From positions 159,051 to 223,050 of the forward strand of contig DF237033.1 of the NCBI GenBank assembly GCA_000708835.1: a stretch of DNA of 64,000 nucleotides. Direction: 5' to 3'. Source of the DNA: Klebsormidium nitens (taxonomy: Eukaryota; Plantae; Klebsormidiophyceae). Positions 211-62,302 of this stretch are shown here, piece after piece (position 1 is the first letter of the stretch; every line of letters starts with the position of its first letter). A program made the translations under genes and the position numbers. Under the pieces are notes generated by a model. The model saw only the letters and a program-made list of their open reading frames with translations. It was not told the DNA's origin and made no database searches.

Positions 211-3200
211 CTACTCCTCGAGGTGGGGCAGCCCCGTCCCTTGCGGCGGCGCGATCCCGTCCCGCTTCCACATCTGATACACACTAGGCGCCCAATGGGA
301 CCCGTACTGTTCCCACATGGTTTTGTTCAAATAGTCGTCCTTCCGCAGGAGCTTGCGGCACCGCTTCGTCCCGCACAAGCATGGCATCACTTTGACGTCA
401 CTCAGGTACGTGATAGGGGACGAGTTGGCTGCCGTGCTATAGTCGAGGAGAATGAGGTCCCCGGGGTGTAGGTCGCGGCGCGCGAGCATGGTCCAGTCGT
501 TGGGGTGGAACCTGGGAGAGGAATGTTGAATGAATTTGGGCTAAGGTTTTTTGCAGGGAAAAACCAAAGATAGAAGGAAGAGGTAATTTGATGCTCGGAA
601 CGCACATTTAGGCTAAACCGGCCGGAAACCCAGAGATCCTGTTGGAGTCCGGGAGTTTTCTGGTGGCACGGAACTTGGAGAACCTCCCAAGTTCGGCTGG
701 AGATTGACCCATAGATCTTTCTTGTCGAGGAGGATAAGGTCCCAGGGTACAAGCCGCGGCGACCGACTACCGTACCAGCGTTTAATTTCGTCGGTCTGGG
801 TGCCAAATAATTAATTATGAATCGATCTGACATTTCGGCGGAGTATTTTATATTTTTCTGACATTTCGTAAAAGTAGCATTCCCCTGCTAAAACCAACCA
901 TTACCAGCCTTTACCACCCGTACAATCAATCCGACCTTTTCGTCATCGAAGAAAAACACTTTCCAAAATATTTGGCAGCCCAATTAACTATTTAATTGAA
1001 AACGAAATTAAACGCTGGTACGGTATGTATCAGTCGTTTGGAAAAACCTGATTTGGCACCCCTCGAGATGGAAACAAGAACGACAAAGAGATGAGGCGAA
1101 TCGCGGTAGTGATCTGAGAGCGCCGCATACTGAAATGCGCACGCCCAAAACCCTTATGTTCCGACAATCGAGAAGAAAGAGCTATCCGTGAGAAAGAATT
1201 GTGAAGATCGACTCCGTTCGCTCAATTGATGACGCGAAGGCTGGGTTCAATCCGCTTCAACAACTACGCAAAAGCTGGGTTCAAGAGGTTTCCAATTAAA
1301 GTTTCCAGAACCACGACGACCTTAAAAACCAAATCCGAGGTATCAGGGCGAAAGGAGCTAAGGAGTGGGCGGTTGTTCCCTTGCTCATTAGATGACCGCG
1401 TTCGTAATGGTGGCTTACGAGGATTGTAGAGGCCCGTGAAGGCGCCTCGTTGCTGAGCGTCCGAACGCCCTGAACTTTGCGATCTAAACTTGTGAATGCA
1501 AAGTAAAGTACTGGAAGTGTTACAGAAAAAAGGCGCTCGAGATCCTGATGGCCGCTCTTACCAGATGGTTGGGTCGCAGCTGTATCGATGAACCCGGCTT
1601 GCATTTATACAAGCAACCGCAAACTAGAGTTGGCATCGTCAAAGGAATCGTCAACAGAACACCTTGCGGCAGTTCTTACCAGATGGTCGGGTCGCAGCTG
1701 TGGTTCATGAACGCCGCAAAGTCCTCTGGCACTCCGTCCTCACGGACCGTCGCCGCTTGAAACTCGTGGTCCGAGATCTGCAAAAAGGTGGCCTTTGGAT
1801 TTACTTTTCGAAGTCGAAAACGGGAGGGTCTTAACATCTTAAGGTTTGGGGTTTTCGAACTCGAAGCGCACTTCCCATTGAACTCGAGGTCCGAGATTTA
1901 AAGAGATTGGGGGTCTTTCACATTTGGGTTTGAAGACCTGAGGTGCATCCCTGCTTGGGATTTGTGCAAGACCCGGGCACACAGCACGTAAAAACCGAAT
2001 CAAAGAATTGATGGATGGAATCGCAAGATCCAAGATTTATGGTCTGGGTCGAAGGATCTGAAGCGCAGTGCCACCACCAGCAATTAGTGTTCCGAGATTT
2101 CAAAATAGAAAGCAAAGGAGGTCAGGCTTTTGCGAAGTTCGTGGTGAGGGACTTCGCCTGCGCCCCAGAAGCGGGTCTCTCTCACTTCGACCAGAAAGGT
2201 TTCCCCAGCTGATCATGGTTGACATTTGCAGGATGAGAATCCTACTAGGTCTCAAGGATCGTAGGCTTCATTAAGGTGTCTGTCTGTTTTGATCTGCATC
2301 GGTCATGCGTGTCAGTAACGCAAAGAAGGAAAGCTTATGTCGGATTTACGGCACGCCACTGAACCATTGAACGGGAGAAGGAGCGAACTATCACTTACAA
2401 GAGACAAAGAAGAAGTGGAGGTAGAGGAATCGAGCACTTGCCTGCACCGCCCAATGTAGAAACTCTTCCCGCTTCTCCAGGGGGAGCGCTTCCAGTTGAT
2501 CGACGGTCAGGATCGTTCCCTTGCGGTCCCGGAGATAGTGCCCGGTAAACACAATCTCCCCCTTGGGAATGAGAGCCTTCACAACCAGTTCCTTCTCCCC
2601 TGGGAACTGCGTACTCTCTTGGATCCAGACATCTGGGTTAAGGCCCTCGTAACCAGGGTCTCGGTCGTCATTCTGCAGGGTCAGTTAAGCAGGTGGTTAC
2701 TGGCATCGTAGAGCAAGACCCGCTACTTGATAACCTAGCTGATACCTCAGAGAGTCGTTTGTCATGACCAGACTTTTCCTCCAAGGTTGAGTCGCTGCCT
2801 TAGGTCTAGACACCTGGGTTAGCTATCTCGTAAGCTGGGTTCCGATCATCATTCTGCATTTGTCCCTTTCAACAGTTTGGGGGGGAAATGTGGTTCTGAG
2901 ATAAGGCCCTTGCAAACAAAGACTGGGCACTAAAGTGAGGCACCAAGAAGCGGGAAGTTTTAGCATAGGGACCAAGGCACATGACAACCGGCATATTGCA
3001 AGATGAGGGGAAAGGCAACGGCAATCTGGTGCGCCATGTTCTTAAGATGAGCAAGTGGAAGAGATGGACATAGAAGAAGCGCACACAGCAGGATGTACAA
3101 GTGCAAGATGGGATGGGGGGGGAAATTTCCAAAGTTCCATGGAGTTTTCTGTCCAGCAAGGTAAGAAATGGCCGCTGAAAGTGCCGAACGAGATAGCAGA

Positions 3201-4970: not shown

Positions 4971-5320
4971 GTACCTACTACCGTTACTACCGTATCTTGC
5001 TGGCAGTGTCAGAGTACAGTACCATATGCTGCAGATTCCAGCTGTGAAGCCAGCTACGGACTAGGTACCGGATACCTAGGTACGGTAGTACCGGTAGTAC
5101 GGTGTACCTACTACAGTACTGGTCACTACTACCTACCTAGTAGGTAGTACAGCGGTGTATGTTCAGTAGTATTGCTGTACGGTTCCATTTCACGGACGGC
5201 CATGCTTCCGACAATTACCGTTACTGTGTTAGCATAGCGTATGGGTCGGGGTACTTAGGGACCTCACTTAATGACACCTACTTGCTTATACCAGCCCGGT
5301 ACCTACCAGGTATCAAACTC
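4971..5320. repeat. GTAC/TAC/TAG-rich low-complexity, palindrome-rich tract
   Basis: Dense GTAC, TACTAC and TAGTAG motifs. Inverted repeat 4976-4994 / 5081-5099 matches at 18 of 19 positions. Confidence 0.7.
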
Positions 5321-5329
5321 GAGACAAAT

Positions 5330-5510
5330 AAGACAAAATAAGCCGAGAGAATACAAGGTAGCCGTTCCGGGACGGGTAGGGTTAATCTGGTGGTTAGGGT
5401 GCGTAGACGGGGAGAGTAGGTTCAAGTTCTTTTTGGGTTATGTTTTTAGTGTTCCCGGTGATCGGGATATAACATCTTATTCTTCGCTTATAAATTATCT
5501 CGCTTAATTC
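5330..5510 (+). repeat. Diverged copy of dispersed GGGTTA-rich small element family
   Basis: GGGACGGGTAGGGTTA core is shared with 61178-61193. Imperfect flanking inverted repeats (ATAAGCCGAGAGAATA / TTATTCTTCGCTTAT). Confidence 0.5.
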
Positions 5511-6945: not shown

Positions 6946-9900
6946 CTACATGAACAGCAGAGGCCTTGATCTCACGGGTACCTTTCCACCTGATTTCAGT
7001 CGTCGAAGAGCCTCGCGTATGTGCGTGGGTCGGATCGGCCCGGTCTCGTTCCATTCGGTCATGACCTCCCTAGCTGCATAATAGAGAACGGGATAATCAG
7101 ACAATGCATAAGTCTTAATACCCTCTTCCCTATCTTGGAAAACGATGATGCATTGATGCACGGAACAGTTATTGATAGGGGCTCAACGTGGACCCCACTG
7201 ATCGTGCCACGTGTCTCGCCGTACTGAAGCTCATTAGATGATAAATTAAAACAGAAAGCACTGGCATACGGAAAACTCGAAAAAACGGGACCGGACAGTC
7301 TGCACGTCTCTTGCTTGGAAGTGATCATAGTTCGAAGGCTCAACTATAAATCCTTGATGGTGAAGCCTTTCCTTGAAAGTACTGAACAAAGTTCGTCGAA
7401 CAGAGTCAAGACGCGACAAAAGGCCAAGAACCGAGCACGGGAGAAAGATGAGGCAGTCATATTATCATATCTTCGAACTGAGTGCAAATTGAGATTGCTC
7501 GAAAGACAAATGGTTCAGCCAAACCACCGTATTATCCAGTAAGTGCATCCAAAAGAATCTACGAGAAACATGGTTCAGATAGATCATCGTGTCTTCAAAG
7601 CGAGTGCACGCAGAAGAATCCTTAAGAAAGATGTTTCGCCAAGAGCACTGCAGACGGGCAAATGGGACCTTAATCGAAGACAGGGACCAAGTCTCAAATC
7701 AGGAACACAAAAATACGCACTATTCTTGACCAGATCATCAACCCGGATGACTAGAACAGTAAATCGCGAGTCTAAAAACCGTAAATCTAAGTAAGAAGAA
7801 AGTTCGAGGGTTTCCGCTCACCAGTTTCGACTAAGTCGCCGACAAACATTTTCGAGAGACCCCCCATGACGATACTCATTGGGATCGAGACGTTGCTCCC
7901 AGACACGCTCTGCATCAACTGCACAAAACGAACGGAATCAATTAAGGTGCAATCAACATCAAATCCAGATCAAACTGCAGGAAAGAATCTTACGGAAATC
8001 GGGGAAGACAAGCGAAGCTTATTTGAGAGATTGCAAAGCTTCAAGAATGCTGATCCGATACAGATCCGTCGCTGCTAGGTCACTCATATCCTCGCCTCCC
8101 ATCAAGGCCTATATATTGGGTTGGGTTTAGTCTAAGAACCGATAGCAGGTTCGAAGCCTAAGGCAAATGCGTTAATGGATCGACGGCTAAAGAAGGAGAG
8201 AAGACTTGCAAAGTCCAGATCAAATGATCACGAGAACGTCTGACAGGCGCCTTTCCGGAGATTGTTTCTGTCCTTTTTCTAGAAAAGGAGTCAGCATGGT
8301 TTCGGGAGATGTATGAAAGCAGTGACTACAAGCCAACAATGAGAGTCCCCCACTGCTTTGCTCAACCGTAACTCCACGGAAAGGACACATCGGAAAAAGC
8401 AGAAACGAAAAGGGAGAGCTAACCCGTTTTAGGTTCGGCCGCGACAGCCCTGATCGTCGAAAGCACTCATACCGCCGCATCTGCTCTTCAGTCATAGACG
8501 CGAAGATTTGCCTGCATAGAAAGAAAGTAACGGATCTTCCTGACGGTTGTAATCTTTGGAGGTATTTGCTGACGTCATGATTCTCAGGTATATGACCAAT
8601 ACCGCCGAATCTGCTCTTCAGTCATCGACGCAATTATCTGCCTGCATAAAGAGAAAGCTGTGGGTTCTTCTGACGGTGTATCTTCGAAGATATCTAATGA
8701 CGTCATGATCCGTCAGGTATCGTCATGATCGTCAGGTGTGTAACCACTTAAAGCACTAATACCAACGCATCTATTCCTCGGTCATTGACGCAAATATCTG
8801 CCTGCATAGAAAGAAAGTAGTGGATCCTTGTGACGGTGTATCTTTCGGAACCCGTATCTGCTGACGTCATGATTCCGTCAGGTGTATGACCATAAAAGCA
8901 CTCATACCGGCGCATCTGCTGTTCAGTTATTGACGCGCATATCTGCCTGAATGAAGAGAAAGTAGCAGAGCTTTCTGAAGGTGTTTGATTCAAACCATCT
9001 GCTGACGTCAGAGTTCGTCACGTATATGACCATTCGAAGCACTTGTAGAACTTGTAGCCTGCTCATGAGCCGTTGTTCCAATCATCTGCTGTTTACCTGC
9101 TCACACGGTATGTAACAAGCCTGAGCTGAAAAGCCTGTCGTCATCTGTCTATGGAAAGCCTTGTCAAGAACATCATAATCATAGTCAAGAGGAAGCCAAC
9201 TATGCTGACGTCATTGCTCCAAACTGTTGATCTCGCTGACATATTTCCTCTAAGAGCTGTGTTGTTCTGGCGACATCATCAGAAACTCAGCAACGACGAA
9301 GTCACTTGCTTGCGAGTGCAAAAACATACTTTCCAAAAGACAGGTGAGTAATGACGGCAATCAAGATTTTTGTGAAATCGATCTCATTACCCAAAACCAG
9401 GGCATCGATCGATTGCACAGCAGGGTTGGCGAACCTTTTTCACCCAAGGACTTCTGAAGAGCATACCAACCGACTTCCTAGGCGCATAGTCTCCCCTTTC
9501 CCTTTGACGGTGGTTGCATCGGTCAGTGGCTGCCCAGACCTAACGACCTTCCAATCTGAGCCTCACTTCAGAAGTACGACGCGGAATCATTATTGCCCTT
9601 CGCTTTAAAACGACCTTTGACTACAAGGCAGCATACATAGAACATCCCGGCTCGCAATCTCCAGGGGCTAAGGACCTTGGTAACACAATCATTCTCGACT
9701 GCGAAAAGAAGAGGCCATTTAAATGGAAAGGCCGTTCTACCTGGCAGAAACAACCCAAAATCCTAAATCAGCTACTCATGCGCTCCGCACCCAACCCACC
9801 CTAACCCCCAAGCTAACCCAACACATCGCCCGGGGTTGACCCTATCATTCATGCGGCTCTTCATACTTCATGAATGAATACTTTTATGACAGAAAAAATT

Positions 9901-42600: not shown

Positions 42601-45600
42601 CTAAGAACCCACATGCATCATCTTAAGCGACTGTGCACCATTTTTAGAAAGGTGGGCTGTCCTTACCTTTTCCTCCCGTATTTCTTCGTAGAAACGAAGA
42701 CCTGCAACCGAAGGAAAGAACGGTTTAAAATCAAGCATATCTCCGGCGCAAAGTAAAGTAACAGTCTTTCCAAGGGATGATAGAAGTACCACCAGTTGAA
42801 TTCGCGTGCGAAGCTCGCTACTTTGACACAAATATTGCACTTACCTGGATCAAAAGACCAGGCGGGGCAGATCCTTCACCTTCCGAACAGATACTGAAAT
42901 ACTGCTTCGAAGCTTCAATTTCTACAGCCCCTTTACATACTACCGCCCCTTGTTGTGGGTGACTCAGAAGCAAGTACTCAGTAAATGTTACTTCGGCGCC
43001 TGCCTCGAGCCCTGAAATCAAAACCAAAATGCACCTAACTCCCAAAACCCCAGAGTAAATGGTGAGCCGCATTTTTCGATCATCATCAGGCGCTGGCTCG
43101 GCTCCGGATAACTTCCCGCCACGTCATTCAATCAGTTCCCTGTCAAAGAGCCCCAAAAAAATCAACGGACAACGACGAGGCCAAGTGTCAAAGCTCTGCT
43201 GAGATGAAGAAAGGGGGATTAGTTTCTCAAACCCACCGTTTTCGAGCTCGACCAACCCCCATCGCTGGCTCGGTTCTGAGAGCAGCCCAGCCACGGGGCC
43301 AGCCGCAAACCCTAAACTCTTACTACCTTTCATCCAAAGTTTCAGAAGCCTTTCCAGAATACAAGCCAACTTTCCTCGCAAGACGCCACAGACGGCTCAG
43401 CTCTGAATGGGGCCATGCCACGTCTTATACATGACTGGATTCTGTAACCTAACAGCACAGTCTTGAAACCACCACGAAGGGTATATGAAAATCAAAAATT
43501 CCAGAAAGCGCAGACCTGACTAGCCGCCACCGCTGACTCGGCTCTTGAGTGCAGCCCCGCCACAACATACCCCGAAGTACCTTCTTGAAGAACCTCGAAA
43601 CCTGGGGAAGTACTTCACGAGGCCTAGTATTAAGAATCTACTGCGGTAGATTTCCCCTCCTGGGGGGAGAAAGACAAAGGAAGAAATTCAACCCACCGTT
43701 TTCGAGCCTGACTAGCCGCCACCGCTGGCTTGGCTCCGAGTGCAGCCCCGCCACGTCATACACGGAGGGGCCCGCCGCAAACGCCTGCTTGCGCCGCAGC
43801 TCCATGACGTCAGGAGGGTCGTCGAAGTCCGGCGGAAGTCCGGGAACCTTTGACACTTGGTGCTCCAGGCGCGTGAACGGCTTCCCGCCGGAGTCGAGGA
43901 AGCTGGGTTCGGGGGAGTGCGTCGGGATGTCGTCCATCGACGCGCTGAAAGGATTGCAGAGTGGACTGTATAGATCGGAGTTTACTTAACTCGTCCATTG
44001 AATGACACAAGAAGCACGAAACTGGTTCCCTTGAAGAGTTGGCGGTCCAGGCTCGTGAACGGCTGTCCGCCAGCTTCGTGGAAGTGGGCTCAAGGGAGTG
44101 GATCGGGAGGTCGTTCATTGACGCCCTGAATGGAAACTGTAGTGGCTTGTTTTCAGTTCGACATCCTTTTAATACGTCCATCGAATCACAGAGAAAGTGC
44201 GGAATATCCGCTGATGTACCGGTTTCTCTGAAGACTTGCTGCTCCCGGCGGGGTCAACTGCTTTCCGCCGATGGAGGAAGCTGGGTTCGGGGGAGTGGGT
44301 CGGAATGTCGTCCATCGATGCCCTGAATAAAGAGGGTGTTGAATTGTTCCAGCTCGATCCTTAATAACCAAGCTATCGCAGGTAATCAGTCGGGAAGTCT
44401 GGTTCTCTTGAGGATTTGGTGCTCCAGGCGAATGGACGGCTTCCCATCGACGCCCTGGGAGAGAGAGTCTTTCGAAGCTTCAGCTCAAAGCTTATGTGCG
44501 ATATGTTATGTGTAGGACAAGACATCTTCCAACGTCTTCTTGAAGTCTTGGTCACCAGGCGCGTGAAACGCTCACCACAGGAAAAGGCTACCGCCTTGTT
44601 GAGAAAGATCGGCTCGAAGGAGTTGGTCGGGAGCTCCTTATTCCAAAAGCTGCCTTCTGTGATTCCAGAGTTTGTGCTTTCTTACTGAGAGTCATCAGTG
44701 TACTCAGGTGAAGGAAGGCATGAACAGGGCTTTCGGAACGAAGTTGGCTCTCTCTCGGCCTAAAAGCGTTCTGTTGTGATCCCAATCGTCAGGCCAGAAT
44801 GGGTAAATAAGAACCACAGCAAACAAGGTGGTAAAACAAAACAGCATACGTAGATACAAGAATTACCCAGTTCGTTGTAAGCAAAACCTTTAAACCGAAC
44901 AGCAGCAAACAACTCTCTGAACGAAAGTCTGCTTGGCAGCTTACGTGCGTCTGTGTTGCTGCGCGGCTCCGGTGTCGGACCCAGACTTCCGCTTGCCGGG
45001 CAAATCCTCGGGGAAAAACGTGCTGCCAAATACTCAAACCCCAAGAAAGAATGAAACAACTTGAAAGGAGAATGTCACAGGATCTGATCAGACTTTCTAC
45101 TCACGTGCGCCGGTGTTGCTGCGCGGCTTCGGTGTCGGACCCAAACTTCCGCTTGCCAGGCAAGTCCACGTCATCCTCGTTGTGCTATTGGGTTACCCGA
45201 TTCGTCGTAAGCAGAAACTTTCTCCAAAGAGCAGCAAAAAAGTGACGGACAGGAAAGTTGCTTGGCAACTTACGTGCGCCGATGTCTCTGGGCCGCTTCG
45301 GTGTCGGACCCATACTTCCGCTTGCCGGGCAAGTCGTCCCCGTCGTCCTCATCCGACAGCGTGTTCGACAGCGTGCTGCTGCTCAGGCCCAGGCTGCGGC
45401 CGTATGGCAAGTGTATCCGCATCGAGTTGCCGGGGGGCTGTAGGAGTGGTGAGAGTAGGCACATGGTCAGTCCGAAGAATTTCCAGCTCAGTTGATTCGA
45501 TGCTCTGTCCCAGGCTGCGGCAGGTGTATCCGCATCGGGTGAGAATAGGCACACGATCAGTTTCGGTATCTTGGGCTTCGTCGGCTATTGACCATGTTGA

Positions 45601-48376
45601 GACCGAACGGCAAGTGTATCGCATCGAGTTGCCAGGTGGCTGTAAATGAGTGGTGAGAAGAGGCACCCGGTTATCCTGCGGTCCGGATACTCTCAGCATC
45701 TTTGGTATGCTTGATCTGCGCGTTGACTAGTAAGGGAATGCACTTGCGTACAGAGAGGTGGGAAAAGCACATGATTGATTACAATGTTCTCAGTTTCATT
45801 ACATTATTGCCCTGTCCCAGGCTGTGACCGATGAGCAGGTAAGTCGCATCGAATTGCAGGGGGCTGTCAGAGAATGGTGGGAACACGCACATGGTCAGTC
45901 CGAAATCGAATCATCGTAAGGAACTATCTTTTCTTATACAGACGAGATCAACCACGACACAAGAACAGCGAGCATGACAGGAACAGGGAATGAGCAAACG
46001 GGGCAAACGGCACACCTCTATGATCCGGTCCTTCAGTGCCTGGTACCACTGCTCAACGTCCTCCGGGTCCCTCCCGCCCAACTGCGGGTTAGAAAACGGG
46101 GTGTCAGATCCGAAGGCACAGTAGCGCCTCACGTCTACGGTTAGCAATTGAACAATATGCTTCACGCTTTTAGAGAGGGGTGAACAAGTTTTACGATTAT
46201 CCAACACTTCACGAGACTGGTGGACGGGCATGGCATCGGTTATAGACTCGTTTTATGCAGGAGCTCGAATCTCTTGGACAGCAGATTTTGAAGAAGCAGG
46301 TGGAGCCCCTGTGCACCTACCAGGAGAAGAGCGTTCAGGGCTGTCGATTTCAAATACAGATTTTGAGAGAAAGAGAAGTGCCTGATGCGTGCTCAAATCC
46401 AAAAAAAGTGGTTCCGCAATACTCTCACAGCTTCGGCTAGTCAACTAGATGCCGCGACCCCGTACCTCCTATGAGAGGCTACTCGAGCGTTATCTCCATC
46501 AAAATTGAACGGTTTGAGACGGACAATAGCAGAGCACCTGCTGATACAGAAGCTCGTGAGACGTTCAATTCCAGAAGAATCGAAACGCGGGCTTACCTGT
46601 AAGGGTCTGATCTCCTTCCCATTGGGCCGCAGCCCAAAGTAGAGCTTAAGGCAGAAGATATCCTGCGGAACCAGAAGGTCAACGTCAGGTTCCAAAAGCA
46701 TCAGGAAAACAGGGCGGAGTCCAGTCCTTGAGCGACCGGATAGCCGAAGCTCCGGTCTGGTTGTCGTTCGAGGAGGCACCTGCTGACAGAACCCGCAGTC
46801 ATGCGATCAAAGGTTTGACTTCGGACTTCGGGTGCCGCCAGAGAGCCGCGTTGAGAGACGCCTCCTTGAGAGTCGAATGAATAGTCCGCCGACATTCCAG
46901 GACGGTGAGCCAGAGGAGGTCTTGACCCAAAAACGGCCTAAGCTTTCGCTGAACGGATGAGAGTAGCACGACGGGTGCCGATTCCCTCAAGCTACTATGA
47001 AGCACGAAAGAGGACGAGAAACGAAATGATCGTCTGCACGCTGACCCGAACCAGATGACAAAATTCCATCTTCTACATGACCAGGCTCAACGGCCTTATG
47101 ACTGGCGTTGTCAGTGTTGGTGGCCCGAAGGATGAGGGTAGCTTTTCGTTCTCTTGACCTGACTGAAAGCTGTTCTGTGATCAGTAAGGAACAGGCGTAA
47201 GATCGGAAGGCCTTTGACGAAACGATACGCGTGACGTTTGACAGAAAGAGCGAGAGAAGGACGAAAAGCCAGATTCAACCACACCGACGATGAAGTTCAT
47301 TGCAGTGACGGGGTGAGAAAGAGAGAAGGATGCGCACCTTCCCAGAGGAGTTGTCGATTCCCAGATTGTCGACTCTGCAGTCGTGACCCAGGTACCATAC
47401 TTTCGCCGGAGTCTGCATGGAATCGTTGGAAAGTTCAGAGTGCAAAGAGTGCCAAAACCTTTTGCCAAAGCAACTGTCTCCTTCGCTCCGAGCGAAAACG
47501 CGATGCTTCTTTTCATCTTGAGAAGGACTGCTGGAGTGGAAAGGACAGTGAAGCAGTCCATCGCAGAGACGGGTCCTCGCGTAAGTGCTAATGGCCATGA
47601 TCTTGCCATGATCTTGACAAACTTCGACTATACAGGATTGCTACGGAAACTGAAGGATCATATTGCATTTTACGCACCCGTAGGTACGCCATCAAAATGT
47701 ATTAAAGCAAAGACTGATTTCGCAAATGGAATTAGAATGGACGAATGGATCTCACTGTCGAAGCAAAGGTTTGTATGACATCGAAGAAAGATCGTTTGAC
47801 CTGAGATCAAACCGAATCAAATTAGAACAGTCACTTTCCTCTTAAGCGCGCCACCAGCCAGAGCATAGTGCTCAGAACCAGCAAACCAGAAGTCGCAAGT
47901 TCGAGAACACGCGCAAGAAAAGCAAAGTCTTCGCACCTGGTTGGCTGCAGCAATTCTTGGGAGTAGCACTGCTTCCTGTTTGCCCGACCGGCGGCCGATA
48001 CACAACAGCCGAAGCCAAGCAACCCAAATTGTCTTTACGGGACAATGTAAGGAACCAGAAGCCAAGTCTTCCAACTTGAGGCAAGCCCTGGATAAAGCTG
48101 GGCTGTGTCTCGCGCCCCAACAACAGAACCTAACAGTTGAAAACAAGTAGATGAAGACAACTTCAACTACTTTTCAAAGGCCGTAAAGATGGAAATGTTG
48201 AAGCAAAAGCGGAGTCTTCGCACCTGGTTGGACTGGGGAAGGCCCCGGAAGTAGCACAGCTGGTGTCCGTTGAGCATGAAGTAGCGCTTGTGCCACTGGA
48301 ACGAGGACCAGCTGTGGCGCCCCAGTTTGTACAACCAGCCCTGCCGGCTTTCTGACATCAGCGACGGAGACACCAT
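24654..48376 (-). CDS. EDR2: EDR2-like PH-START-DUF1336 lipid-binding protein, 18 exons, about 840 aa
   Basis: Exons 48224-48376, 47338-47412, 46597-46662, 46016-46081, 45274-45437, 43697-43944, 42667-42701, 42166-42275, 41512-41610, 40776-40840, 40172-40243, 38662-38826, 29208-29332, 28128-28245, 27160-27488, 26434-26604, 25330-25671 and 24654-24773 are all GT-AG and phase-compatible (2523 nt). PH: QGWLYKLGRH..WHKRYFML. START: WRLVRLENGLRFYEE, GVVDAPCNEIF, WPRDLCMARYW, GYVRA, MRVAGIRELF. DUF1336: FRNSRFKLIP, YLEIDIDIGSS, DMAFLVQGSTEDELPE. Confidence 0.92.
25672..26000 (-). repeat. Echo copies of EDR2 exon-17 acceptor
   Basis: 49 nt identical between 25626-25674 and 25757-25805 (offset 131), with intact CAG|GTC. 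Weaker copies at about 25870-25900 and 25960-26000. Confidence 0.9.
28246..29207 (-). repeat. Echo copies of EDR2 exon-14 acceptor and exon-13 3' end
   Basis: About 28340-28420 copies CAG|ATACCC..CGAAGCGCC(T/C)TCTTCTCC. About 28820-28880 and 29000-29060 copy GAGCCCGCCGTCAT(T/C)GTGGCGCC(G/A)GAAACG; spacing about 190 bp. Confidence 0.8.
34870..36140. repeat. Old duplication with about 960-bp offset inside the 9.3-kb EDR2 intron
   Basis: AGGGCAGTCTGAAGC at 34892 and 35855; CTC(A/G)TCCTCACCACA at 35131 and 36087. A third partial match (CACTTTCTCG..ATCAT) lies near 37550-37575. Confidence 0.6.
38340..38661 (-). repeat. Echo copies of EDR2 exon-12 donor
   Basis: Minus CCTTCCACCTCCCACTGCTGATGCGTGTCGCAG|GTGAGCTGACGTC (about 38508-38550) versus true CCTTCCACCTCCCGATGCTGATGCGAGTTGCAG|GTGAGCTGACGTCA; a weaker copy at about 38345-38420. 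Confidence 0.85.
38827..39920 (-). repeat. Seven-unit echo array of EDR2 exon-12 acceptor, period about 161-169 bp
   Basis: Acceptor copies at 38996, 39161, 39323, 39486, 39647, about 39749 (AG lost) and 39912 versus true 38827. Each carries up to about 70 nt of exon start (ATCATCTCTCC..GGAGTCCAGTCG..GACGCCCCA..TCTGGTGAT). Confidence 0.93.
43200..44470 (-). repeat. Echo arrays on both sides of EDR2 exon 6
   Basis: Acceptor copies at 44126, 44323 and 44455 (true 43945). Donor-side copies at about 43230-43300 (intact CTCGAAAACG|GTGGG), 43385-43430 and 43520-43570. Confidence 0.85.
44930..45900 (-). repeat. Echo arrays on both sides of EDR2 exon 5
   Basis: GTGTCGGACCCA(G/A/T)ACTTCCGCTTGCC at about 44975, 45133 and 45302 (true). 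CGCATCGA(G/A)TTGC..GGGGCTG at 45420 (true), about 45620 and 45845. Confidence 0.85.
47900..48223 (-). repeat. Echo of EDR2 exon-1 donor
   Basis: AGTCTTCGCACCTGGTTGG is identical at about 47926-47944 and 48213-48231; a weaker copy at about 48062-48110. Confidence 0.75.
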
Positions 48377-54200: not shown

Positions 54201-55637
54201 TAAGGTCCCAGTTCTTTGAAGCAAATAGTTGAAGTTTTGTTCTACTTACTCGCTCTCCGCTCTCTTCCTCGATCCCGTTGATTTGCAGGTTGACAGCAAA
54301 ACAATTGACAGTTGCTTTCCGACCCGCCCCCTGCATCGTGCCGCCATGTCACCCAAAGGTTTCCGCTTCCAAGCGCTGCACCCACTTACCCGTTTCAGTC
54401 CGTTCGGGCCACTCGCTTTCCATTTCGCCACTCTGTCGATTCCGTTTGATTTGCAGGCTGTCACGTTCCGCACCCCCCTTGCGTCGCGCTACCACGTCAT
54501 CTCGAGGTCCCCGCTTCAGAGCGCTACCTAGACCTACTCCGTCTTGAGTCCCGTTCCGTTCACTCTCTCCGTTCCGCTCACTTCCTGCCTTCCGCTTACT
54601 TTCAGGCTGTCGCGTTCCGCACGGCTCCCCGCATCGCGTTGCCACGTCACCTCGAAGTTCCCGCCTCCAAGCGCTACCTAGACCTTCTTGTGGAGGGCGC
54701 AAAAGCGATTGGGTTGGACAAAGATTACGTCAGGAGGCTTGAGGAGCTGCCACGTGCCCCTCCCGCCAATGGGATCGAGAAATGGATCAGCCGCTCGTTC
54801 GCGATGTTCTTCTTCTTCTGGGCGGTCCGCCAGGTGCGTCTCACGTTCCTTCACAGTTTGTTGTGTTTCGTGTCCAAGTGGCTGTTTGAAGGGTCTCCCT
54901 GGGAGAAACTTTTTCTCCCACTTGGAAGCGGGATGCGTTTGGCCTATTCGGTGAGAGATGTTTTGGTTTGTTTACGACGTTAGACAAAATAAACAACATA
55001 GTTTGTCACCTTTGCAGGGTCTAGATACGAGATCGGTGTGGGGTGCTCTCGATACAATGCTTTATCGTATCGTTTTAGCTGCCGTCCGGCTTCTATTGAG
55101 TCTTGCAAGTTGGTGGAATCCGCCACCGTTTCGTTCTTGCAATTTATGGGTTCCGTAAATGCAGGGACAGGATGTTGCAGCTGCAGTACGGTGTCAATAC
55201 TTCAAGCTTCGGCCTCCGACTATCTACTCGATCTTGGCCACTATGTAAGAGAATCAACACTTCATCGAAAACACTTACATCTGGAATCTGCGTTCTTGAG
55301 CCCCCACTCACTGTCCGAGATGAGCTCTCAACAAGTCCACGAACTGACGTGACTGTCTGTCCTGCAGCTACCCGGGATGTCCGCCGTTTACTTTGTCAAG
55401 CTCGTAGCGTTTTTTGTGTACCATTACAGGGAGGTCTGTCGGCAGTCGACGTCCCCAGCGTTGCAACTGCTCGCCTACCCGTTGCTATTTATCATGTTGC
55501 TCATTATGTTGCCCGGGAGTTTCATCGGGGTGGGGATAAGATTAGCCCGCACTTGCAGCTCCTATGTAGACAAGGGTTGGAAGAGGATCAAGGTGGTTGT
55601 TCCGGAACGGGAAGCAAAGGAGCTCAAAGTGAACTGA
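51243..55637 (+). CDS. Gamma-glutamylcyclotransferase-like (GGCT/AIG2-like fold) protein with C-terminal hydrophobic segments, about 320 aa
   Basis: Exons 51243-51444, 52135-52288, 52974-53082, 54606-54833 and 55368-55637 are phase-compatible (963 nt). Motifs: NFAFGSNM, YRLAFN, VIHGTL, LYKSEG, PASKRYLDLLVEGAKAIGLDKDYVRRL. An acceptor at about 51222 means an upstream exon is possible. Confidence 0.85.
53860..54605 (+). repeat. Echo array of GGCT-like exon-4 acceptor
   Basis: CAG|G copies ending at 54456, 54288, 54126 and 53983 (true 54605); spacings 149, 168, 162 and 143. The nearest copy retains GCTGTCACGTTCCGCAC..GCGCTACCTAGACCT. Confidence 0.88.
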
Positions 55638-56976: not shown

Positions 56977-59900
56977 ATGTCGAACGGGTTGGAGACCTCG
57001 TTCAGATTCAACAACCAGGATAATGGACTTGTAATCCATGCAAAGGAAAACTTCGTCAACAACAATTGGGGGGCGCTGCTATTGGTAAGTATCGACTGTG
57101 GATTATCGCTATCTTCTTGCCAATAGGCTGACCTGCTGATGCCATCGGCACGGCTGTCGGGTTGCCAGCAGGCTGAGAATGTGCTGATGGAGTCTTTCCT
57201 GAAAGTCTGTCTTGTGACTGTATTTTGCAGTAGTGATTGCATGCTTAGGCACACAAGGTTGCCATATGTGCACCTCAATGTTCGCCAAGTGAGTGCCAGG
57301 TTGTCAATAACCAGCTTTCTTTGAGGAATTCCACCACCTAGAAGTCTTGAGAATGTACCCTCTTCTCGGTAAGGCCACTTTTAAGATATCATTGCTTCAT
57401 TTGCCTCAGGTTGATTGAAGTGTCAGTAATTTTGGCTTGCTCCGACAGTCTTTGACGATCACAGGTAGGTGGAAGCAACGCATGTATCTGCTGCTTACTT
57501 TCAAACTCGGCGGTCGCTTGATTGTTTGCAATGCTGACTGGTAATGGTTTCAATGCACGGTATGGCTGCTTCTGTGTTGGAAAATTTGGCGTAAGTCCTT
57601 GACTGAGCTCCTTCTGCGTTACGGTAGAACAAACGGGCTCACACCATATTGGAAACATAAGAGGTTCAGACTTGGTGAAGCGCTTATGTCCAGTCTGCCT
57701 GCCAAACTGTTGTAATAATCACGGTGACTGTCACGATCTGCTTATGCTCTGGACAGACAGCAACAATCTGCATTGCTGACCTGTTCACAAAGTTGCATTC
57801 ATTCTCCAGCTTCATGCAGCAAGTGGGTAAATTGTGAGCTTTATCAGTATTGTTTGCTCGGGAATGTTTACAATCGTTTTGGTGCTCTGCTTCCGAATTG
57901 TTAAGCTTAATCTTGATTCGAGACTGAGTATGTAATTCGCTCGCTGATGAAGTTTGGAGGTGTAGACGCCGCTCCTCGACTAGAGATGCAGGCTGGATAG
58001 TGTCAAACAGCTTGCGTGAGCTAGTTTTCCATTCTAAGCCGGTTGATGTCGCCATGTGCCAATTGACCCGGTTACACTAGAATTTGCCAATCTGTTCAAT
58101 TCAAAGGAGGCCGTGGACTTTCACACTCGTGCAAATGCATATGGTTTGGGTTCCTCTTTTACGGGTAAATGTCTTGCTTTTTCTTGCTGCGGTGATGCAT
58201 TTGCGAGAACGCTAGGACTTCCACCTCGACCAGCTCTCTTTGTTGTTGCTTGGACGTGTCGATTCGCTGTCCAGTAGGTTCTGTTTTAGCTTCTCTTCCC
58301 GCATCATTTGTTTGCGGGGAAGACACTTGCCGTTTACAGCGGTTCGCTTCTTTGGTGATCAAGTTGCTGTGGCATGTGTGGCAGGCTCCGGGGTTGCATG
58401 GAGCATGATGTCTGTCCTGATCATGTGTTTGCGTTCTTACGTGTCCAAGTTGAGCGGTTCTTCATTTTCCGCTTTTCCGCTCTTCTTTGAACGTGCCGGG
58501 TCAAGTCGCAAAAGCGAGCGGCAGCGACTGCATGACCTGTTCAGAGCGCCTTCATACGAAGTTCGCAAACATGAAACTGGCGCACATTCAGAGAGTGTCT
58601 GTCTCCGGCTATGCATTTTGTTCGTCTTCTTCGTTGTAAGGAGAACATATGTTGCCTGGTAGTCAAGCTCATATGTCCTGGTACATTCCTGGTTCTACGC
58701 ACCTTCGAACGAGTCAGCAGGATTACCTGACTGCATTTTCACAGCTTGTCAGGACCCTGTTTTGTCTGTATGTTTAGCCAAGGGTTGTAAACCTTGGCGT
58801 GTAGCAAAGTCAGGTCTGTCAGTAACTTCCGGTTTGCTTGCAACAGAGTGCTTGGTGTGTAATGTGCTCTTGATGTCCTGTTGTCAGCATGCTGGAGTTC
58901 AGTTTGTAATTGCTCTTATTCACCACTTCCTCTCCCTCTGTTTCGCATTTGCTAGATATATCACATGTAGTTTATGTAATTTTCCTTGGAACCTTATCAG
59001 ATCAAACCTCAGCAACTGATCTTGTATCGACAAAAGGTTGTACTGCATCCCGGAAAACGATCTGCGCAGATAAGGAACTCAAGTCTGTCGAGAACTGACA
59101 AACATACATGTACTCTTTGCAGGTTGATGGAGCGTTGGACACAAAAGAGGGCACAATTCGGGCTAAGATTACGGGCAAGAAGAAGTTTTTCCCAGATGTG
59201 AGCATCCACAATGCCTACTCAGACCCTCAAGCCCGCTTCTTCTGTTGAATTTGGCACTTCATCTGTGGGAGCCAATAGTTGAGATTTCAAGTGATTGCTT
59301 GTGGCTCTTCTTGACCAAACATACAAACTGGTTTGCCGAGACCCCCTTCTTGATCTTCTCATTAAGCATGGCAAAGACAGTATCATTGCACATCACTAAG
59401 TTTGGCAAAGTAGGGGTCATGCTTGAGCGAATCACAATGGAAATTACGAGCAACGCAGCTGGAACAAGGACCTAGGTTCGGCAACCGGCCCGCTTTGTAC
59501 AAGCTAACCACCCTTCTATGTTGTCCGTAAACCGGCTTTGCCGAGGCTATTCGATACGAAAAGCAAGTTGAGTTCCACCCTGAAGATGGTCACAAAACGG
59601 GCTATGGTCACGAAACGGGCTACATCTTTCTCGGCCGAAAAGTGGACATGTGCGGTTCTCACTAACCAGTCTTGTAAACCAAGTGCTAACCCGTCCGCTG
59701 TTTGTCCGATTTTTGCAGAGGCTGTTTCTAACGTCCGGCAAGATAGTGGGCACGCTGAAATCCGACATGAAGCGGATTACGAGGCAGGCAGGAGATTTCT
59801 GATACTTGATAACCCTCCACTTAACCATCTTCTAACCGGTTGATTATTTGGCTGGCTTTTGCAGAGGCCGTTCCTGACGTCCGGCGAGGTTGGTGCCACG

Positions 59901-62302
59901 CTCGAGACGGACACGAAGCAGGTTACGTACTACGCGGCCGGGAAGAAGACGTTCGATCTGTGGAACGGCGGCCTTACGAGCCTTGACCTCAAGGCATCGG
60001 CGTTCTACCACGTAAACACGGAAAAGGAGGGGCTGGTGCGTCCTCTGCTTTACAGGGCTCTGTGGCTTGTTCTGTTGTTGCTGGCCAAATTTTAAGCTGT
60101 GGGGGATGGGCGGTCTTGGCTATGGAAGAACGGCCTTGGTGCTCTGTCATGTTATCCTTCTACAGTGCTCGTGTACTACGCTTTTGTGGGGTACTTCCCT
60201 GGAGTTCCGACTCTGATTGCCAAATATGTAGCAGTACTTTCTGCTGGCTCGCGCCTCGCTTAAATGCTGACAGCTCGGAAGTCTTGTACGAAACCGGTTT
60301 TGTGATTGTGGTGGGGTTGGTGATTCAAGTTTTCCGTAAAAATTCAAGGGGGTGCTGGTGGTTTAAACTTTCCGTTAGTTACAGTCTTCCCTGGCTTGTT
60401 TATTGCCAGCTTGCTGTTTTTTCTCGTACTGGAATTGTGCCCATCATTGTTGTGGATGTCCTTATCTACCTCTTGGATCAGAAACTGATTGCTTTTGTCT
60501 TGATGTCTGTCACACAAGCAAAGTGGAAACGAGTCTAGTTGTGCTTCGTTTGCTACCGCTTCTGAGATTGCGATGGCTCATGCTAACGTCGCTGTGTTGG
60601 TGACAAGCAACTGCATACCTCGTTTTGAGCATTGTCCTCACGTTCAGTGGAGCGAGATCCCCGAGTTTGGTAAACTCGTTTGGTGAGCTTTTCTTCGTGA
60701 ACCGAGAGCGTCGAGATTCCTCTTTCACCATGAGCCGCCACGAGTATGGAAAACCACTCGGCTGTGCGCAAACCAAGGTGGCAGCATAGATATAAGCAAA
60801 TCAGATTACGCTGGACATTTTTCAGGCGCTCTCTCTACGAAATTGGCCGAAGTGGACTGAAAGCTCATTGAAAGTCCAGGTAGGGGAAGCCTCGCAATAG
60901 TGATCCCGTGCGCGCAGATCAAGAAGAAGGCCAAGGTCGAGTTGTGCCAGAAGATCTTCAACTTCACGGAGGAGCAGGACCTCAAGCTCAAGCTCGGCTA
61001 CGATCTCCTCGAGAAGGTAAGTGTTCGTTGTATCACTGATTGAGTCACGACTTTGAAGACGGGTAGTTAGTGGCCTCAGCCTGTTATTACTCAAGCTCAA
61101 CTTTGGCTGTGGTCTCTATGAGAAGGTGGGTTCTGATCGGAGCCGACACAGTTTAGGAATAGTAAGCTCACCAGCCTGGGACGGGTAGGGTTAGTTTGGG
61201 GTGGGTACGGGTGCGGAGCGGGTGGTTTTTATAGGTTGGGTTTTTAGTGTTTGGTTTGAGCTTACCGGTACTATTCCTACGGCTTACTATTCCTAAACTG
61301 TGCCGTCATTTCTGGTAGTAGCTCCGGATGTCAGGGGTCAAGTAAATGACAAAAGCATCCTTGTACGATTCGCTTCTTAGACTGCTGAAGCTCAAGCTTG
61401 GTTATGGTCCCTCAAAAGGTAACTCAATCCGAGGTCAGGGTTTCGAAGTACAGGGTTTCGGGGTTTTGTTTTGTAAGGGGTATTGTTTTGAAATCTCCGG
61501 ATGACTACCTCATCGAGGCGGTGAGATCTGCATGCGGTTCGCAGAGGTCTGAGTTCTTAGGCTTAGGAGTTTACTTGAAGACTTTTGGTGTCTAAGCTGA
61601 GGTTACGACAGGTCAACAGACACAGTGAGTCGCGAGTCGCAACATGCTGTTGCGTTGGATGATAGCGCTTTTTAGAACTCAAGGTTTTTTGAGGCGTTGG
61701 CAAATGCTTCGAGAGCCGAGCCCAAAAGAGGTCAAAGCACTGTTGGCTTGTTGCATACATTTTGACGCACCACGTTCAGCTTAGTATTGGCTGTGTGGCC
61801 GAGTCTGCCATATCCAACGTCGATCCTGGAGGCAGTTGGTATTTCACGTCATCCTGTTCTCTGCGCCACTTCTGTCATGGCTTGTTTGCGGGTTTGCCTG
61901 AATTGCCCTCAGATTTCCGATTTCAGAGAGGAACTGCTAAAGGCTGTACAGACTTATGCATACCTATGTGGCGTCGTTGCAAGGTTCTATAGCAGAGTGG
62001 CACCGCACGCTGGCGCCTCTGTGAGGTTCTATGATTGGGTCGCACCATTTGCTTGGAAAGGGCGTTCTATGTCAACTCTTTTAGATAGAGTTGCCAACCC
62101 CTTATGGGGTTCTTAACCCTACGCTTCCTACCTCCTGGACTTGACGTTCTGCAATGAGCATTGGGAGCCGTGGCGCTCTTGGCTGCCCACTGAGGCTTTC
62201 CTCTTCTATGCCCTGCAGACCCCATATGCTTCCCTCCGAGAAAACCGGTGGATCCTTCACAGCAATCTGAAGGACAAGTGGACGGTTGAGTACGAGCTTT
62301 AG
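56977..62302 (+). CDS. OEP21: Chloroplast outer envelope pore protein 21-like, about 178 aa
   Basis: Exons 56977-57084, 59123-59197, 59865-60035, 60918-61016 and 62219-62302 are all phase 0 (537 nt). They give MSNGLETSFRFNNQDNGLVIHAKENF..|VDGALDTKEG..FFPD|..|..KIFNFTEEQDLKLKLGYDLLEK|TPYASLRENRWILHSNLKDKWTVEYEL*, matching the OEP21 hallmarks ETSxRY..IHAKE, GELDT, QDxxxKxGY, PYxQIRENNW and KWxxxYDL. Confidence 0.9.
59530..59864 (+). repeat. Echo copies of OEP21 exon-3 acceptor
   Basis: TTTTGCAG|AGGCTGTTTCTAACGTCCGGC (acceptor about 59718) versus true TTTTGCAG|AGGCCGTTCCTGACGTCCGGC; a weaker copy at about 59545-59600. Confidence 0.8.
61017..61430 (+). repeat. Echo copies of OEP21 exon-4 donor, interrupted by a small inverted-repeat element
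   Basis: CTCAAGCTCAACTTTGGCTGTGGTCTCTATGAGAAG|GT (ends about 61125) and CTGAAGCTCAAGCTTGGTTATGGTCCCTCAAAAG|GTAA (ends about 61418) versus true CTCAAGCTCAAGCTCGGCTACGATCTCCTCGAGAAG|GTAA. Confidence 0.8.
61147..61302. mobile_element. MITE-like element, GGGTGCGGAGCG-core family
   Basis: Perfect 21-bp inverted repeat CACAGTTTAGGAATAGTAAGC (61147-61167) / GCTTACTATTCCTAAACTGTG (61282-61302) around a GT-rich core. No clean target-site duplication. Confidence 0.7.

Follow-up and report, generated by a model that had tools for sequence, protein, structure and literature searches.

In a 64,000-nucleotide stretch of the alga Klebsormidium nitens (contig DF237033.1, positions 159,051 to 223,050; hereafter the window), introns are lengthened by tandem copies of their own splice junctions. 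We identified 20 arrays anchored on splice junctions of six genes. Each array begins in an exon and extends into the adjoining intron, and we term the additional junction-spanning copies echoes. Comparison with a related alga suggests that arrays arose independently at the same junctions in two lineages, mostly at the flanks of long exons. Since the same boundaries would have been duplicated independently in a related species, this recurrence points to a junction-linked duplication process that is undescribed at such a scale.

Results

Local direct repeats were scored by an offset scan with thresholds of 40/60 or 32/50 identity. Offsets of 40-260 yielded about 24 clusters in the window, whereas offsets of 5000-5980, which serve as far-offset null, gave 0 matches at the same thresholds. 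Self-similarity in the array segments exceeds this null 30-100x, and the approximately 37 kb of array-free DNA, old conserved noncoding intervals included, lies at the level of the null without any repeat excess. Self-BLAST of the window returned 48 local direct HSPs against 3 inverted ones and no dispersed repeat families, and junction segments compared with all introns matched only their own adjacent intron. Introners or transposon-derived intron sequence are ruled out by these two results. A TRF run on the window missed nearly all junction arrays because the copies are only 65-90% alike.

The arrays comprise 12 acceptor and 8 donor cases with 1-7 echo copies each (Table 1). For seven of the 20, RNA contigs from four studies prove the junction. 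The other anchoring junctions are supported by Pfam, by canonical sites read in sense orientation or by position-conserved orthologous junctions in the relative, and gene models were curated by hand except in the gene verified by RNA or orthologs. The first period per array ranges from 101 to 210 bp with a median of 160; the 110-200 bp range takes in 82% of all 39 adjacent periods, and the 145-170 bp range 49%. Overall, periods spread across 101-225 bp and units are 65-95% alike, which rules out a minisatellite-size unit (around 10-100 bp, with high similarity between units). In the window the exon part measures 3-95 nt (median 60), and across both species 3-154 nt, an exon share of 0.03-0.72; the junction is not tightly centred. 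Units carry a single junction and their exon part is shorter than the whole exon. With one junction per unit and no alternative joints in RNA, tandem exon duplication or mutually exclusive exons are ruled out. Exon-derived parts of the copies are better conserved than intron-derived parts.

An earlier note on this DNA, made from the letters alone, had described tandem echoes at many exons, acceptors and donors alike, in 1-7 copies with spacings of mostly 110-200 bp and a cluster at about 145-170 bp, and the arrays bear this out. Its statement that similarity falls with distance holds only loosely: decay is greatest in the outermost copies, yet some far units resemble the real junction more than units that lie nearer to it. 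The functional copy is indeed the exon-proximal one, although this is a logical necessity rather than a finding. Six unrelated genes do carry arrays, but the OEP21 label is without Pfam match and SET relies on a weak match plus an NHSC motif. Two repeats drop out: the repeat of 126 bp at 22410-23140 codes for WD40 and is not an echo array, and the array at 16480-16841 follows directly on a stop codon, with no coding splice junction.

Without the arrays, the ancestral introns come out short, at roughly 150-550 nt. The proposal of a recurrent, gene-independent local duplication that expands introns holds. Intron 38827-40171, where about 1090 of 1345 nt are echo copies, illustrates it, and the arrays of the relative at the same junctions strengthen the case for recurrence. 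Unit trees reveal array-internal and multi-unit duplications, with multi-unit offsets in a 7-copy array. Two short-period arrays in the window are not junction-linked, and arrays are lacking at some long exons (26434-26604; the blocks at 48.2, 51.3 and 52.1 kb).

Table 1. Arrays and related features (coordinates in the window)
Feature	Position	Strand	Remarks
SET-domain exon, donor echo	1550..1701	-	real donor after 1680; one echo at 1562, period 118; decoy GT intact
Acceptor echo	2609..2865	-	real acceptor before 2672; echo 2853, period 181; decoy AG intact
Short-period (61 nt) array	7436..7652	.	no recognised junction
TAF11-like exon, acceptor 8511, three echoes (8641/8801/8946)	8460..9043	-	periods 130/160/145; every decoy AG intact; TAFII28 Pfam match begins at the acceptor
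Exception: array of 104-118 nt units with perfect 63-bp duplication (16564-16689)	16480..16841	-	just past SMP stop codon (~16855); 3' UTR or downstream
SMP-like exon, donor 17616, two echoes	17302..17711	-	exon part 95 nt, period ~180; SMP Pfam match
Same SMP-like exon, acceptor 17820, up to seven echoes	17752..18870	-	over ~1 kb; periods 118-167
EDR2_C exon, acceptor 25671, one young echo	25602..25816	-	94% identical, period 131, exon part 69 nt; EDR2_C E=6.5e-38
101-bp duplication abutting acceptor 27488	27484..27657	-	nearly all intronic, exon part 0-5 nt; copy's AG lost
Acceptor echo, 28245 to 28408	28193..28423	-	period 163; AG intact
Exon 29208-29331, donor echo x2	28819..29281	-	periods 210, 173; junction conserved in relative
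9.3 kb intron of EDR2-like gene	29332..38661	-	orthologous intron ~1.4 kb in relative; no coding content, no interior arrays
Exon 38662-38826, donor echo x2	38342..38724	-	RNA junction; periods 158, 140; exon part ~60 nt
Exon 38662-38826, acceptor echo x7	38742..39918	-	RNA junction; periods 169, 165, 162, 163, 161, 102, 164; 5/5 mapped decoy AG intact, unused
Exon 41512-41610, weak donor echo	41297..41546	-	RNA junction; period 195; decoy GT changed to GC
Exon 42166-42275, acceptor echo	42268..42484	-	RNA junction; period 107-109; only ~7 nt of exon in unit
Exon 43697-43944, donor echo, up to 4 copies	43065..43763	-	RNA junction; exon part 64 nt, periods 139-192
Exon 43697-43944, acceptor echo x4	43855..44654	-	RNA junction; exon part 89 nt, periods 150-197
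Exon 45274-45437, donor echo x2	44863..45338	-	RNA junction; periods 169, 160; both decoy GT intact
Exon 45274-45437, acceptor echo x2	45380..45904	-	period ~202-216; acceptor validated by orthologous junction
AIG2/GGCT-like exon, acceptor 54606, two upstream echoes	54311..54688	+	periods 149, ~150; exon part 82 nt
Acceptor 59865 of exon labelled OEP21 in the earlier note	59386..59927	+	clear echo 59719, period 146; two weaker echoes
Donor echo, real donor after 61016	60973..61143	+	copy 109 bp downstream; decoy GT intact

Splicing ignores the intact decoys, as had been supposed. Mapped copies keep an intact decoy AG in 19 of 22 cases (0.71 expected if neutral, p = 0.08) and an intact decoy GT in 6 of 10, a loss at the neutral rate; taken together, retention is close to the neutral expectation. 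The EDR2-like gene has a single isoform in the RNA contigs of four studies and uses the exon-contiguous splice site only. Neither decoy use nor alternative joints occur in these Logan contigs, which represent dominant isoforms only. The pseudo-sites keep their consensus yet are silent in dominant isoforms, as in a junction-spanning minisatellite of the F7 IVS7 type. Exon definition would fit the choice of acceptor, since a decoy acceptor has no donor downstream, while 5'-to-3' scanning, in which the most upstream donor wins as in human F7 intron 7, would fit the choice of donor. Exon-chain prediction picked echo pseudo-exons, for example 43237-43275 and 38954-38995, and the echoes are hence an annotation hazard.

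A 28 kb orthologous stretch of a related alga, taken from an independently assembled metagenome contig, allowed the comparison of orthologous introns that the earlier note had proposed. Only the exons align with the window; the introns are unalignable. All 28 tested junctions are conserved in the relative. Echo arrays are present at 6 of its 28 junctions, and all six are among the 10 that bear echoes here (p = 5.6e-4). The echoes group with the exon of their own species (support 0.985 and 0.998), and unit boundaries differ: the exon part measures 89, 64, 57 and 69 nt in the window versus 111, 94, 98 and 154 nt in the relative. At the junctions with exon parts of 89 versus 111 and 64 versus 94 nt, the periods are about 185 versus 155 bp. 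At the EDR2_C acceptor 25671 the relative also has an echo with other boundaries and a period of 218 instead of 131 bp. Because the boundaries differ and the copies group by species, the arrays probably have independent origins. The median periods are alike, 160 bp here and 165 in the relative. Arrays favour long exons in both species (Fisher 0.024 and 0.0025), and in the combined data 14 of 24 long-exon junctions have arrays versus 4 of 34 short-exon junctions, about 2x the geometric expectation. All affected introns are position-conserved in this diverged relative and the copies lie inside pre-existing introns, which rules out intron gain of the AGGT type and agrees with the distinction drawn earlier; no new intron was created.

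Discussion

Our preferred reading, which we hold tentatively, is that decaying tandem duplications of 100-225 bp (mode around 160) straddle existing exon-intron junctions, that they are recurrent and site-biased, and that they derive from nucleosome-spaced breaks. In each event the exon would stay intact while the intron side gains a copy that consists of exon edge plus intron edge. Through further rounds, some of them multi-unit, an array would reach as many as seven copies and add as much as about 1.1 kb to its intron. Each of the two lineages would independently undergo such events, time after time, beside the same exons, most of them long, and intron interiors and the remaining noncoding DNA would see few or none. 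Copies beyond the first may be ordinary intron-internal duplications of echo units, in which case the junction-spanning events would number no more than the roughly 20 that initiated arrays. Selection would remove any duplication that takes in a whole exon, which could explain in part why short exons lack arrays. As origin we envisage staggered breaks or nicks whose spacing is about that of one nucleosome repeat, with a nucleosome positioned on the exon boundary, followed by fill-in and rejoining. That nucleosome-spaced breaks at exon boundaries are the mechanism is our leading guess, drawn from unit length; the mode of around 160 bp is compatible with a nucleosome repeat and does not prove it. 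In a single case, the perfect young 63-bp duplication (16564-16689), there is zero microhomology, as expected for staggered-break fill-in. Also possible, and held with less confidence, is a junction-targeted mutational process in which features of the exon boundary, for example a positioned nucleosome, paused polymerase or spliceosome-linked damage, would repeatedly provoke tandem duplications of about nucleosome length at the edges of long exons.

The explanation might instead lie in filters that act on uniform mutation. Duplications of about 160 bp would then arise everywhere, exonic and whole-exon ones would be purged, ancestral introns would be short so that the majority of surviving duplications inevitably cross a junction, arrays would propagate by unequal exchange, and exon-derived parts would stay recognisable longer since the real exon is constrained. 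Much of what we see agrees with this: the short ancestral introns, the lack of arrays at short exons that such a filter predicts, the better conservation of exon-derived parts, the array-internal and multi-unit duplications in the unit trees, and the broad rather than fixed exon share. Selection against whole-exon duplication does account for part of the pattern. Still, uniform duplication filtered by selection fits poorly. The noncoding intervals of the syntenic block at 38.3-52.3 kb are old, since conserved exon blocks shared with the relative flank them on both sides. For unique noncoding DNA in this block, uniform initiation predicts about 9-16 unanchored arrays (about 9 after the detection penalty), figures that depend on assumed target sizes and a 1.8x detection correction, and 0 were seen (p about 2e-4). 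The comparison of junctions with other DNA that the earlier note had suggested thus came out, within the window, in favour of junctions, the 37 kb of other DNA being equally without excess. The contrast between long and short exons is also about twice what geometry provides, and extra site-specific tolerance would be needed for both lineages to hit the same six junctions independently. We regard this explanation as less likely than our preferred reading.

Less probable again is that ancient arrays of the common ancestor were kept young by concerted evolution, through unequal crossing-over or gene conversion with the real unit. Grouping of echoes by species is its classic signature, the same junctions are occupied in both species, and the multi-unit offsets of the 7-copy array would agree with it. 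However, turnover of inherited arrays would leave exon-side breakpoints and periods unchanged, and both differ between the species at comparable junctions; moreover, most copies are 70-85% alike and hence a poor substrate for homologous exchange. We consider very improbable a selected function in which decoys or exon-edge copies tune splicing, be it as intron retention decoy exons, U1/U2AF landing sites or spacers. The decoy AG is retained slightly above neutral and the same exons recur across species, but the copies decay steadily with no conserved core beyond the inherited part, the loss of donor decoys matches the neutral rate, the two species differ freely in unit boundaries, periods and copy numbers, and the RNA contigs of four studies hold no alternative isoform. 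Mis-assembled or expanded repeats can practically be dismissed even though the DNA runs holding the stretch derive from the assembly's own sample, since the copies differ by 10-35% and are each unique at read length, unspliced low-depth RNA-library contigs from other studies match 38889-39121 and 38340-38500 with 0 differences, and the relative's independently assembled contig has the same architecture.

If the junction bias holds, introns here expand from their splice sites, and gene structure is linked to local chromatin or transcription-coupled DNA damage. Under a junction-targeted process introns would grow outward from their junctions, and their DNA would consist for the most part of relics of earlier exon edges. 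For the study of splice-site choice the arrays also amount to dozens of natural experiments, in which the spliceosome ignores intact decoy acceptors and donors spaced about 160 bp apart, and they could give a sequence-only readout of nucleosome spacing.

Comparison with known systems

Satellite DNA has monomers of nucleosome length, around 150-180 bp, in long, homogenised and usually non-genic arrays. The arrays described here share the head-to-tail order and a unit near one nucleosome repeat; unlike satellites, they have 2-8 units and are strongly diverged, junction-specific and intragenic. Plant tandem duplications are said to arise from staggered breaks or paired nicks (Vaughn and Bennetzen in 2014, Schiml et al. 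in 2016). This is a plausible route to a clean tandem duplication without microhomology, which our one perfect young case matches, but the reported plant events are mostly shorter and have no tie to splice junctions. Internal gene duplications that cover partial exons and introns were reportedly described by Gao and Lynch in 2009 as sporadic events that create new introns or exons. They too are local, tandem and intragenic, can take an exon edge with an intron edge and leave extra splice sites. In our case existing introns are expanded serially with no new intron, in a narrow size mode and at recurrent sites. Duplications of this kind are treated in reviews, for example PMC3443670. In the Rogers model of intron gain by tandem duplication of exonic AGGT, with the potato RdRp case as example (PMC4974935), splice signals are likewise doubled by tandem duplication. 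In that model an exonic segment is duplicated and the intron arises anew between its copies; here the segment already includes a junction, and its copies sit within an intron that is old.

We found no published description of junction echo arrays as seen here. The earlier note's view that no named mechanism matches is correct for their pervasiveness, which is new, but not for the kind of repeat, which is already named from single-gene precedents (F7, PMC1557585). In human F7 intron 7, the first unit of a 37-bp VNTR minisatellite spans the exon 7 / intron 7 boundary, the pseudo-donors are silent but functional, and the exon-contiguous, most upstream donor is chosen (PMC1557585). As in F7, our 20 arrays run head to tail and the terminal unit holds the authentic splice site. 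The F7 case concerns one locus, where units of 37 bp occur on the donor side alone; the units here measure 100-225 bp, acceptors are hit as often as donors, and dozens of junctions are affected, in unrelated genes and in a second species.

Results

The earlier note had claimed that introns in the window carry tandem copies, here termed echoes, of a unit spanning their own exon-intron junctions, and these arrays are real. An alignment-free scan that paired each position with the one lying d bases further along found about 24 clusters at local offsets versus 0 matches at far offsets (5000-5980, about 1000 offsets) with thresholds of 40/60 or 32/50. The fundamental periods are 101-225 bp, with a few arrays at 61-66 bp, and between about 226 and 400 bp the scan of the window found only multiples. 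Self-BLAST of the window gave 48 direct HSPs, with offsets nearly all below 1 kb, versus 3 inverted HSPs, and no dispersed repeat families. The repeats are thus genuine: they are local and direct and keep to a restricted size. At default settings Tandem Repeats Finder detected almost none of the echo arrays in the window, because the copies are too diverged (65-95% alike in a seed-and-extend search and self-BLAST); the exceptions were a perfect 63-bp duplication and a 126-bp repeat. The latter is WD40 coding sequence and has nothing to do with the echo arrays. It lies in a HeLo-WD40 open reading frame whose N-terminal helical domain precedes the WD40 repeats and whose exact 429-aa product has no record in the gene-position index. 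A direct repeat with an offset far beyond the usual period and a short inverted repeat are listed in the table.

Each junction was compared with its first echo in sense orientation, and the local-alignment table of the window contains 20 junction-anchored arrays with 1-7 echoes each. Both acceptors (12) and donors (8) are affected, as had been proposed. The first period per array is 101-210 bp (median 160) and the exon part of the unit 3-95 nt (median 60). All anchors, the real junctions at the exon ends of the arrays, have canonical splice sites, and the site itself is usually repeated in the echo. One exceptional array starts a few bases past the SMP stop codon, and two short-period arrays and a 30-nt match have no recognised junction. 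The perfect 63-bp duplication has exactly 2.0 copies, which are 100% identical, and borders with zero microhomology; it is nested within the older 3' UTR array, the one past the SMP stop codon, and is the youngest duplication event of the window.

RNA contigs over 38340-44339, taken from four runs of four studies, were concordant and revealed one spliced form of the EDR2-like gene. From their overhanging ends, the adjoining exon boundaries lie at 45274 and, surprisingly, 29331. The gene thus contains an intron of 9.3 kb, across which contigs of all four studies join 38662 to 29331. This intron has no Pfam-recognisable coding content and no internal repeats; its + strand is strongly skewed (A>T). 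The RNA-proven exons translate into a START-domain protein, and Pfam finds EDR2_C in downstream exons (E = 6.5e-38), so that the label EDR2-like is correct and the gene extends from <24.8 kb to >46.6 kb. Throughout the RNA-covered stretch all arrays start within an exon and extend into the adjoining intron, and the junction segments are similar to their own adjacent intron only and to no other intron.

For the other genes, open frames were listed at each array and tested against Pfam; self-written gene finders were kept out of the evidence because their use would be circular. The labels given earlier held for TAF11, where the TAFII28 match begins precisely at the predicted acceptor, and for SMP and the GGCT-like (AIG2-like) gene, both matched in Pfam. 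The SET exon has a weak match and an NHSC motif, and the exons labelled OEP21 have no Pfam match. The genes present (EDR2, SMP, AIG2-like) and a GC content of about 50% accord with Klebsormidium nitens.

Features of the window and of the relative's contig (window positions unless L001 is given)
Feature	Position	Strand	Remark
EDR2-like exon	43697-43944	-	RNA contigs, GT..AG adjusted
EDR2-like exon	42667-42701	-	RNA contigs, GT..AG adjusted
EDR2-like exon	42166-42275	-	RNA contigs, GT..AG adjusted
EDR2-like exon	41512-41610	-	RNA contigs, GT..AG adjusted
EDR2-like exon	40776-40840	-	RNA contigs, GT..AG adjusted
EDR2-like exon	40172-40243	-	RNA contigs, GT..AG adjusted
EDR2-like exon	38662-38826	-	RNA contigs, GT..AG adjusted
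EDR2-like intron	29332-38661		9.3 kb
Conserved block	47353-47410	-	collinear with relative
Conserved block	48216-48352	-	collinear with relative
Conserved block	51336-51449	-	collinear with relative
Conserved block	52130-52294	-	collinear with relative
TAF11 acceptor	8511		predicted
Array past SMP stop codon	16480-16841
Perfect 63-bp duplication	16564-16689
Short-period array	7436-7652
Short-period array	3975-4117
30-nt match	37527
126-bp repeat	22410-23140		WD40 coding
HeLo-WD40 ORF	21866-23155		single long ORF
Direct repeat	61152-61300 / 63314-63479		offset 2.16-2.18 kb, 71-78% over ~120 nt
Inverted repeat	63292-63329 / 63445-63482		38 nt, 97%
Echo copy chosen as exon	43237-43275
Echo copy chosen as exon	38954-38995
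Echo copy chosen as exon	44945-45022
Intronic duplication in relative	L001 12435-12657		weak, ~172 bp
Intronic duplication in relative	L001 18134-18378		weak, ~172 bp

A search of the representative library with an 82-aa exon gave three weak matches, two of which (P0001 and P0002) do not map to the window. The sole useful match, the 59-aa fragment P0003, leads to the 58.8 kb metagenome contig Ga0590115_0002444 (JGI sample 3300060285) of a related species, which is clearly eukaryotic (algal) DNA. Its gene calls are prokaryote-style: exons and introns are chopped into short ORFs, and the resulting public protein predictions, P0003 among them, are read-throughs of exon plus intron. Over the 28 kb compared (L001 and L002), the relative carries an ortholog with exons in the same order at 74-91% nucleotide identity, and the introns of the two do not align at all. 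All 28 tested junctions have canonical sites at conserved positions in the relative, which validates several predicted exons of the window. The minus-strand conserved blocks (75-84% nucleotide identity) are probably 5' exons of the EDR2-like gene and a neighbouring gene; they bear no echo arrays in either species.

The relative has arrays of its own, with periods of 151-218 bp (median 165). Of the 28 junctions tested, 6 bear echoes in the relative, and each of these belongs to the 10 orthologous junctions with echoes in the window (hypergeometric p = 5.6e-4). The shared junctions lie beside four of the longest exons (164, 248, 165 and 342 nt), and long exons are favoured over short ones in both species (Fisher 0.024 and 0.0025). 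Where echoes are well preserved, they share 79-89% identity with the exon edge of their own species versus 63-76% with that of the other, and echo trees group by species (support 0.985 and 0.998). Unit boundaries differ as well: the exon parts in window and relative measure 89 and 111 nt at one shared junction (periods about 185 and 155 bp), 64 and 94 nt at another, 57 and 98 nt at a third, and 69 and 154 nt at a fourth (131 and 218 bp). An upper limit of about 95 nt for the exon part is thus true in the window and refuted as a general rule by the 111 and 154 nt of the relative. Judged from these sequence comparisons, the species-wise grouping and the differing boundaries argue that the arrays formed independently at the same junctions after the lineages split. 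This strengthens the recurrence of the gene-independent duplication process that had been proposed. An assembly artefact is ruled out by the independently formed arrays, and also by exact echo-copy matches in unspliced RNA-library contigs of other studies. Two weak intronic duplications in the relative have no mapped junction and are possible unanchored events.

Similarity had been said to fall with distance from the exon. In unit-by-unit matrices and trees the outermost units are indeed those that have decayed furthest, but the third echo of two arrays is more like the real unit than either the first or the second, and a simple ladder with the newest copy beside the exon is unsupported. The seven-copy array aligns best with itself at a two-unit offset in self-BLAST, and some of the distal units form pairs among themselves. 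Growth therefore proceeded by repeated events including multi-unit duplications, and junction spanning is required of the initiating event only, so that about 20 events, rather than about 55 copies, have to be counted.

Discussion

The duplications described here are recurrent and local and straddle exon-intron junctions, with sizes that peak near 160 bp in each of two lineages and a bias to the flanks of long exons. They have substantially lengthened introns, and the splice sites used are the exon-contiguous ones only. The size mode and the location at exon boundaries suggest that the duplications may stem from breaks or nicks that are spaced by roughly one nucleosome repeat around a boundary-positioned nucleosome, and whose repair through fill-in and joining would yield a tandem duplication. 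The zero microhomology of the perfect young duplication fits fill-in repair, as a single case away from a junction. The exon share of the unit varies between 0.03 and 0.72, so that the junction has no tight central position, and any phasing is therefore loose.

The most serious rival holds that duplications of about 160 bp occur everywhere, and that those within an exon or containing a whole exon are removed by selection, leaving survivors that span junctions. Short ancestral introns would force many surviving duplications across a junction, and exon-derived parts stay recognisable longer since the real exon is constrained, for which we allowed a 1.8-fold detection advantage. Against uniform duplication stands the comparison of junctions with other DNA proposed in the earlier note, which within the window gave no excess outside the arrays: array segments have a 30-100-fold excess of self-similarity, whereas about 37 kb of other window DNA has none over the far-offset null at 95-235 bp, at any threshold. 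In the block 38.3-52.3 kb, where the exons are established from RNA or from conservation with the relative and unique noncoding DNA amounts to about 8 kb, about 16 unanchored arrays would be expected under uniform initiation, or about 9 with the detection penalty applied, and 0 were seen (p ~2e-4). The 9.3 kb intron is a weakened control, because its ortholog measures only about 1.4 kb; about 8 kb was therefore gained in the window's lineage, and this expansion is possibly young. A better control is offered by the array-free noncoding intervals that separate conserved exon blocks at 46.0-52.3 kb. Recurrence at orthologous junctions across species also speaks against a selective filter. Ancient arrays kept young by concerted evolution rank below this rival, and a selected splicing function ranks last.

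Splicing ignores many of the decoys, the AG and GT sites repeated in the echoes, as had been supposed. An intact AG is still present in 19 of 22 mapped acceptor copies and an intact GT in 6 of 10 donor copies; retention equals or exceeds the neutral expectation (about 71% at about 84% per-site identity), and we therefore reject a purging of decoys by selection. No joint in the RNA contigs of the four studies uses a decoy, although these contigs show dominant forms only and rare use is possible. The site used is always that contiguous with the rest of the exon, hence the most upstream donor and the most downstream acceptor of a series. Donor choice is thus like that in the human F7 intron 7 minisatellite, where selection of the most upstream donor was shown experimentally (PMC1557585). 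We attribute acceptor choice to exon definition, because only the real acceptor has a downstream donor at native distance. A self-written exon-chain predictor merged genes and took echo copies as exons (see table), which shows that the decoys are exon-like. Pseudo-exons from echo arrays are likely contaminants of automatic gene models in this genome.

Internal gene duplications over partial exons and introns are a known class, and nucleosome-length monomers are well known in satellites. Neither introns nor repeats are mentioned in the main text of the Klebsormidium genome paper, and our literature search, incomplete in coverage so that a description elsewhere is possible, found no published account of the combination seen here. 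Junction-spanning tandem repeats with silent pseudo-sites have been described at single loci such as F7 intron 7, and the kind of repeat described here therefore has precedents. The combination for which no account was found comprises units of 100-225 bp at acceptors and donors, at dozens of junctions in unrelated genes, and their independent recurrence at orthologous junctions in two species.
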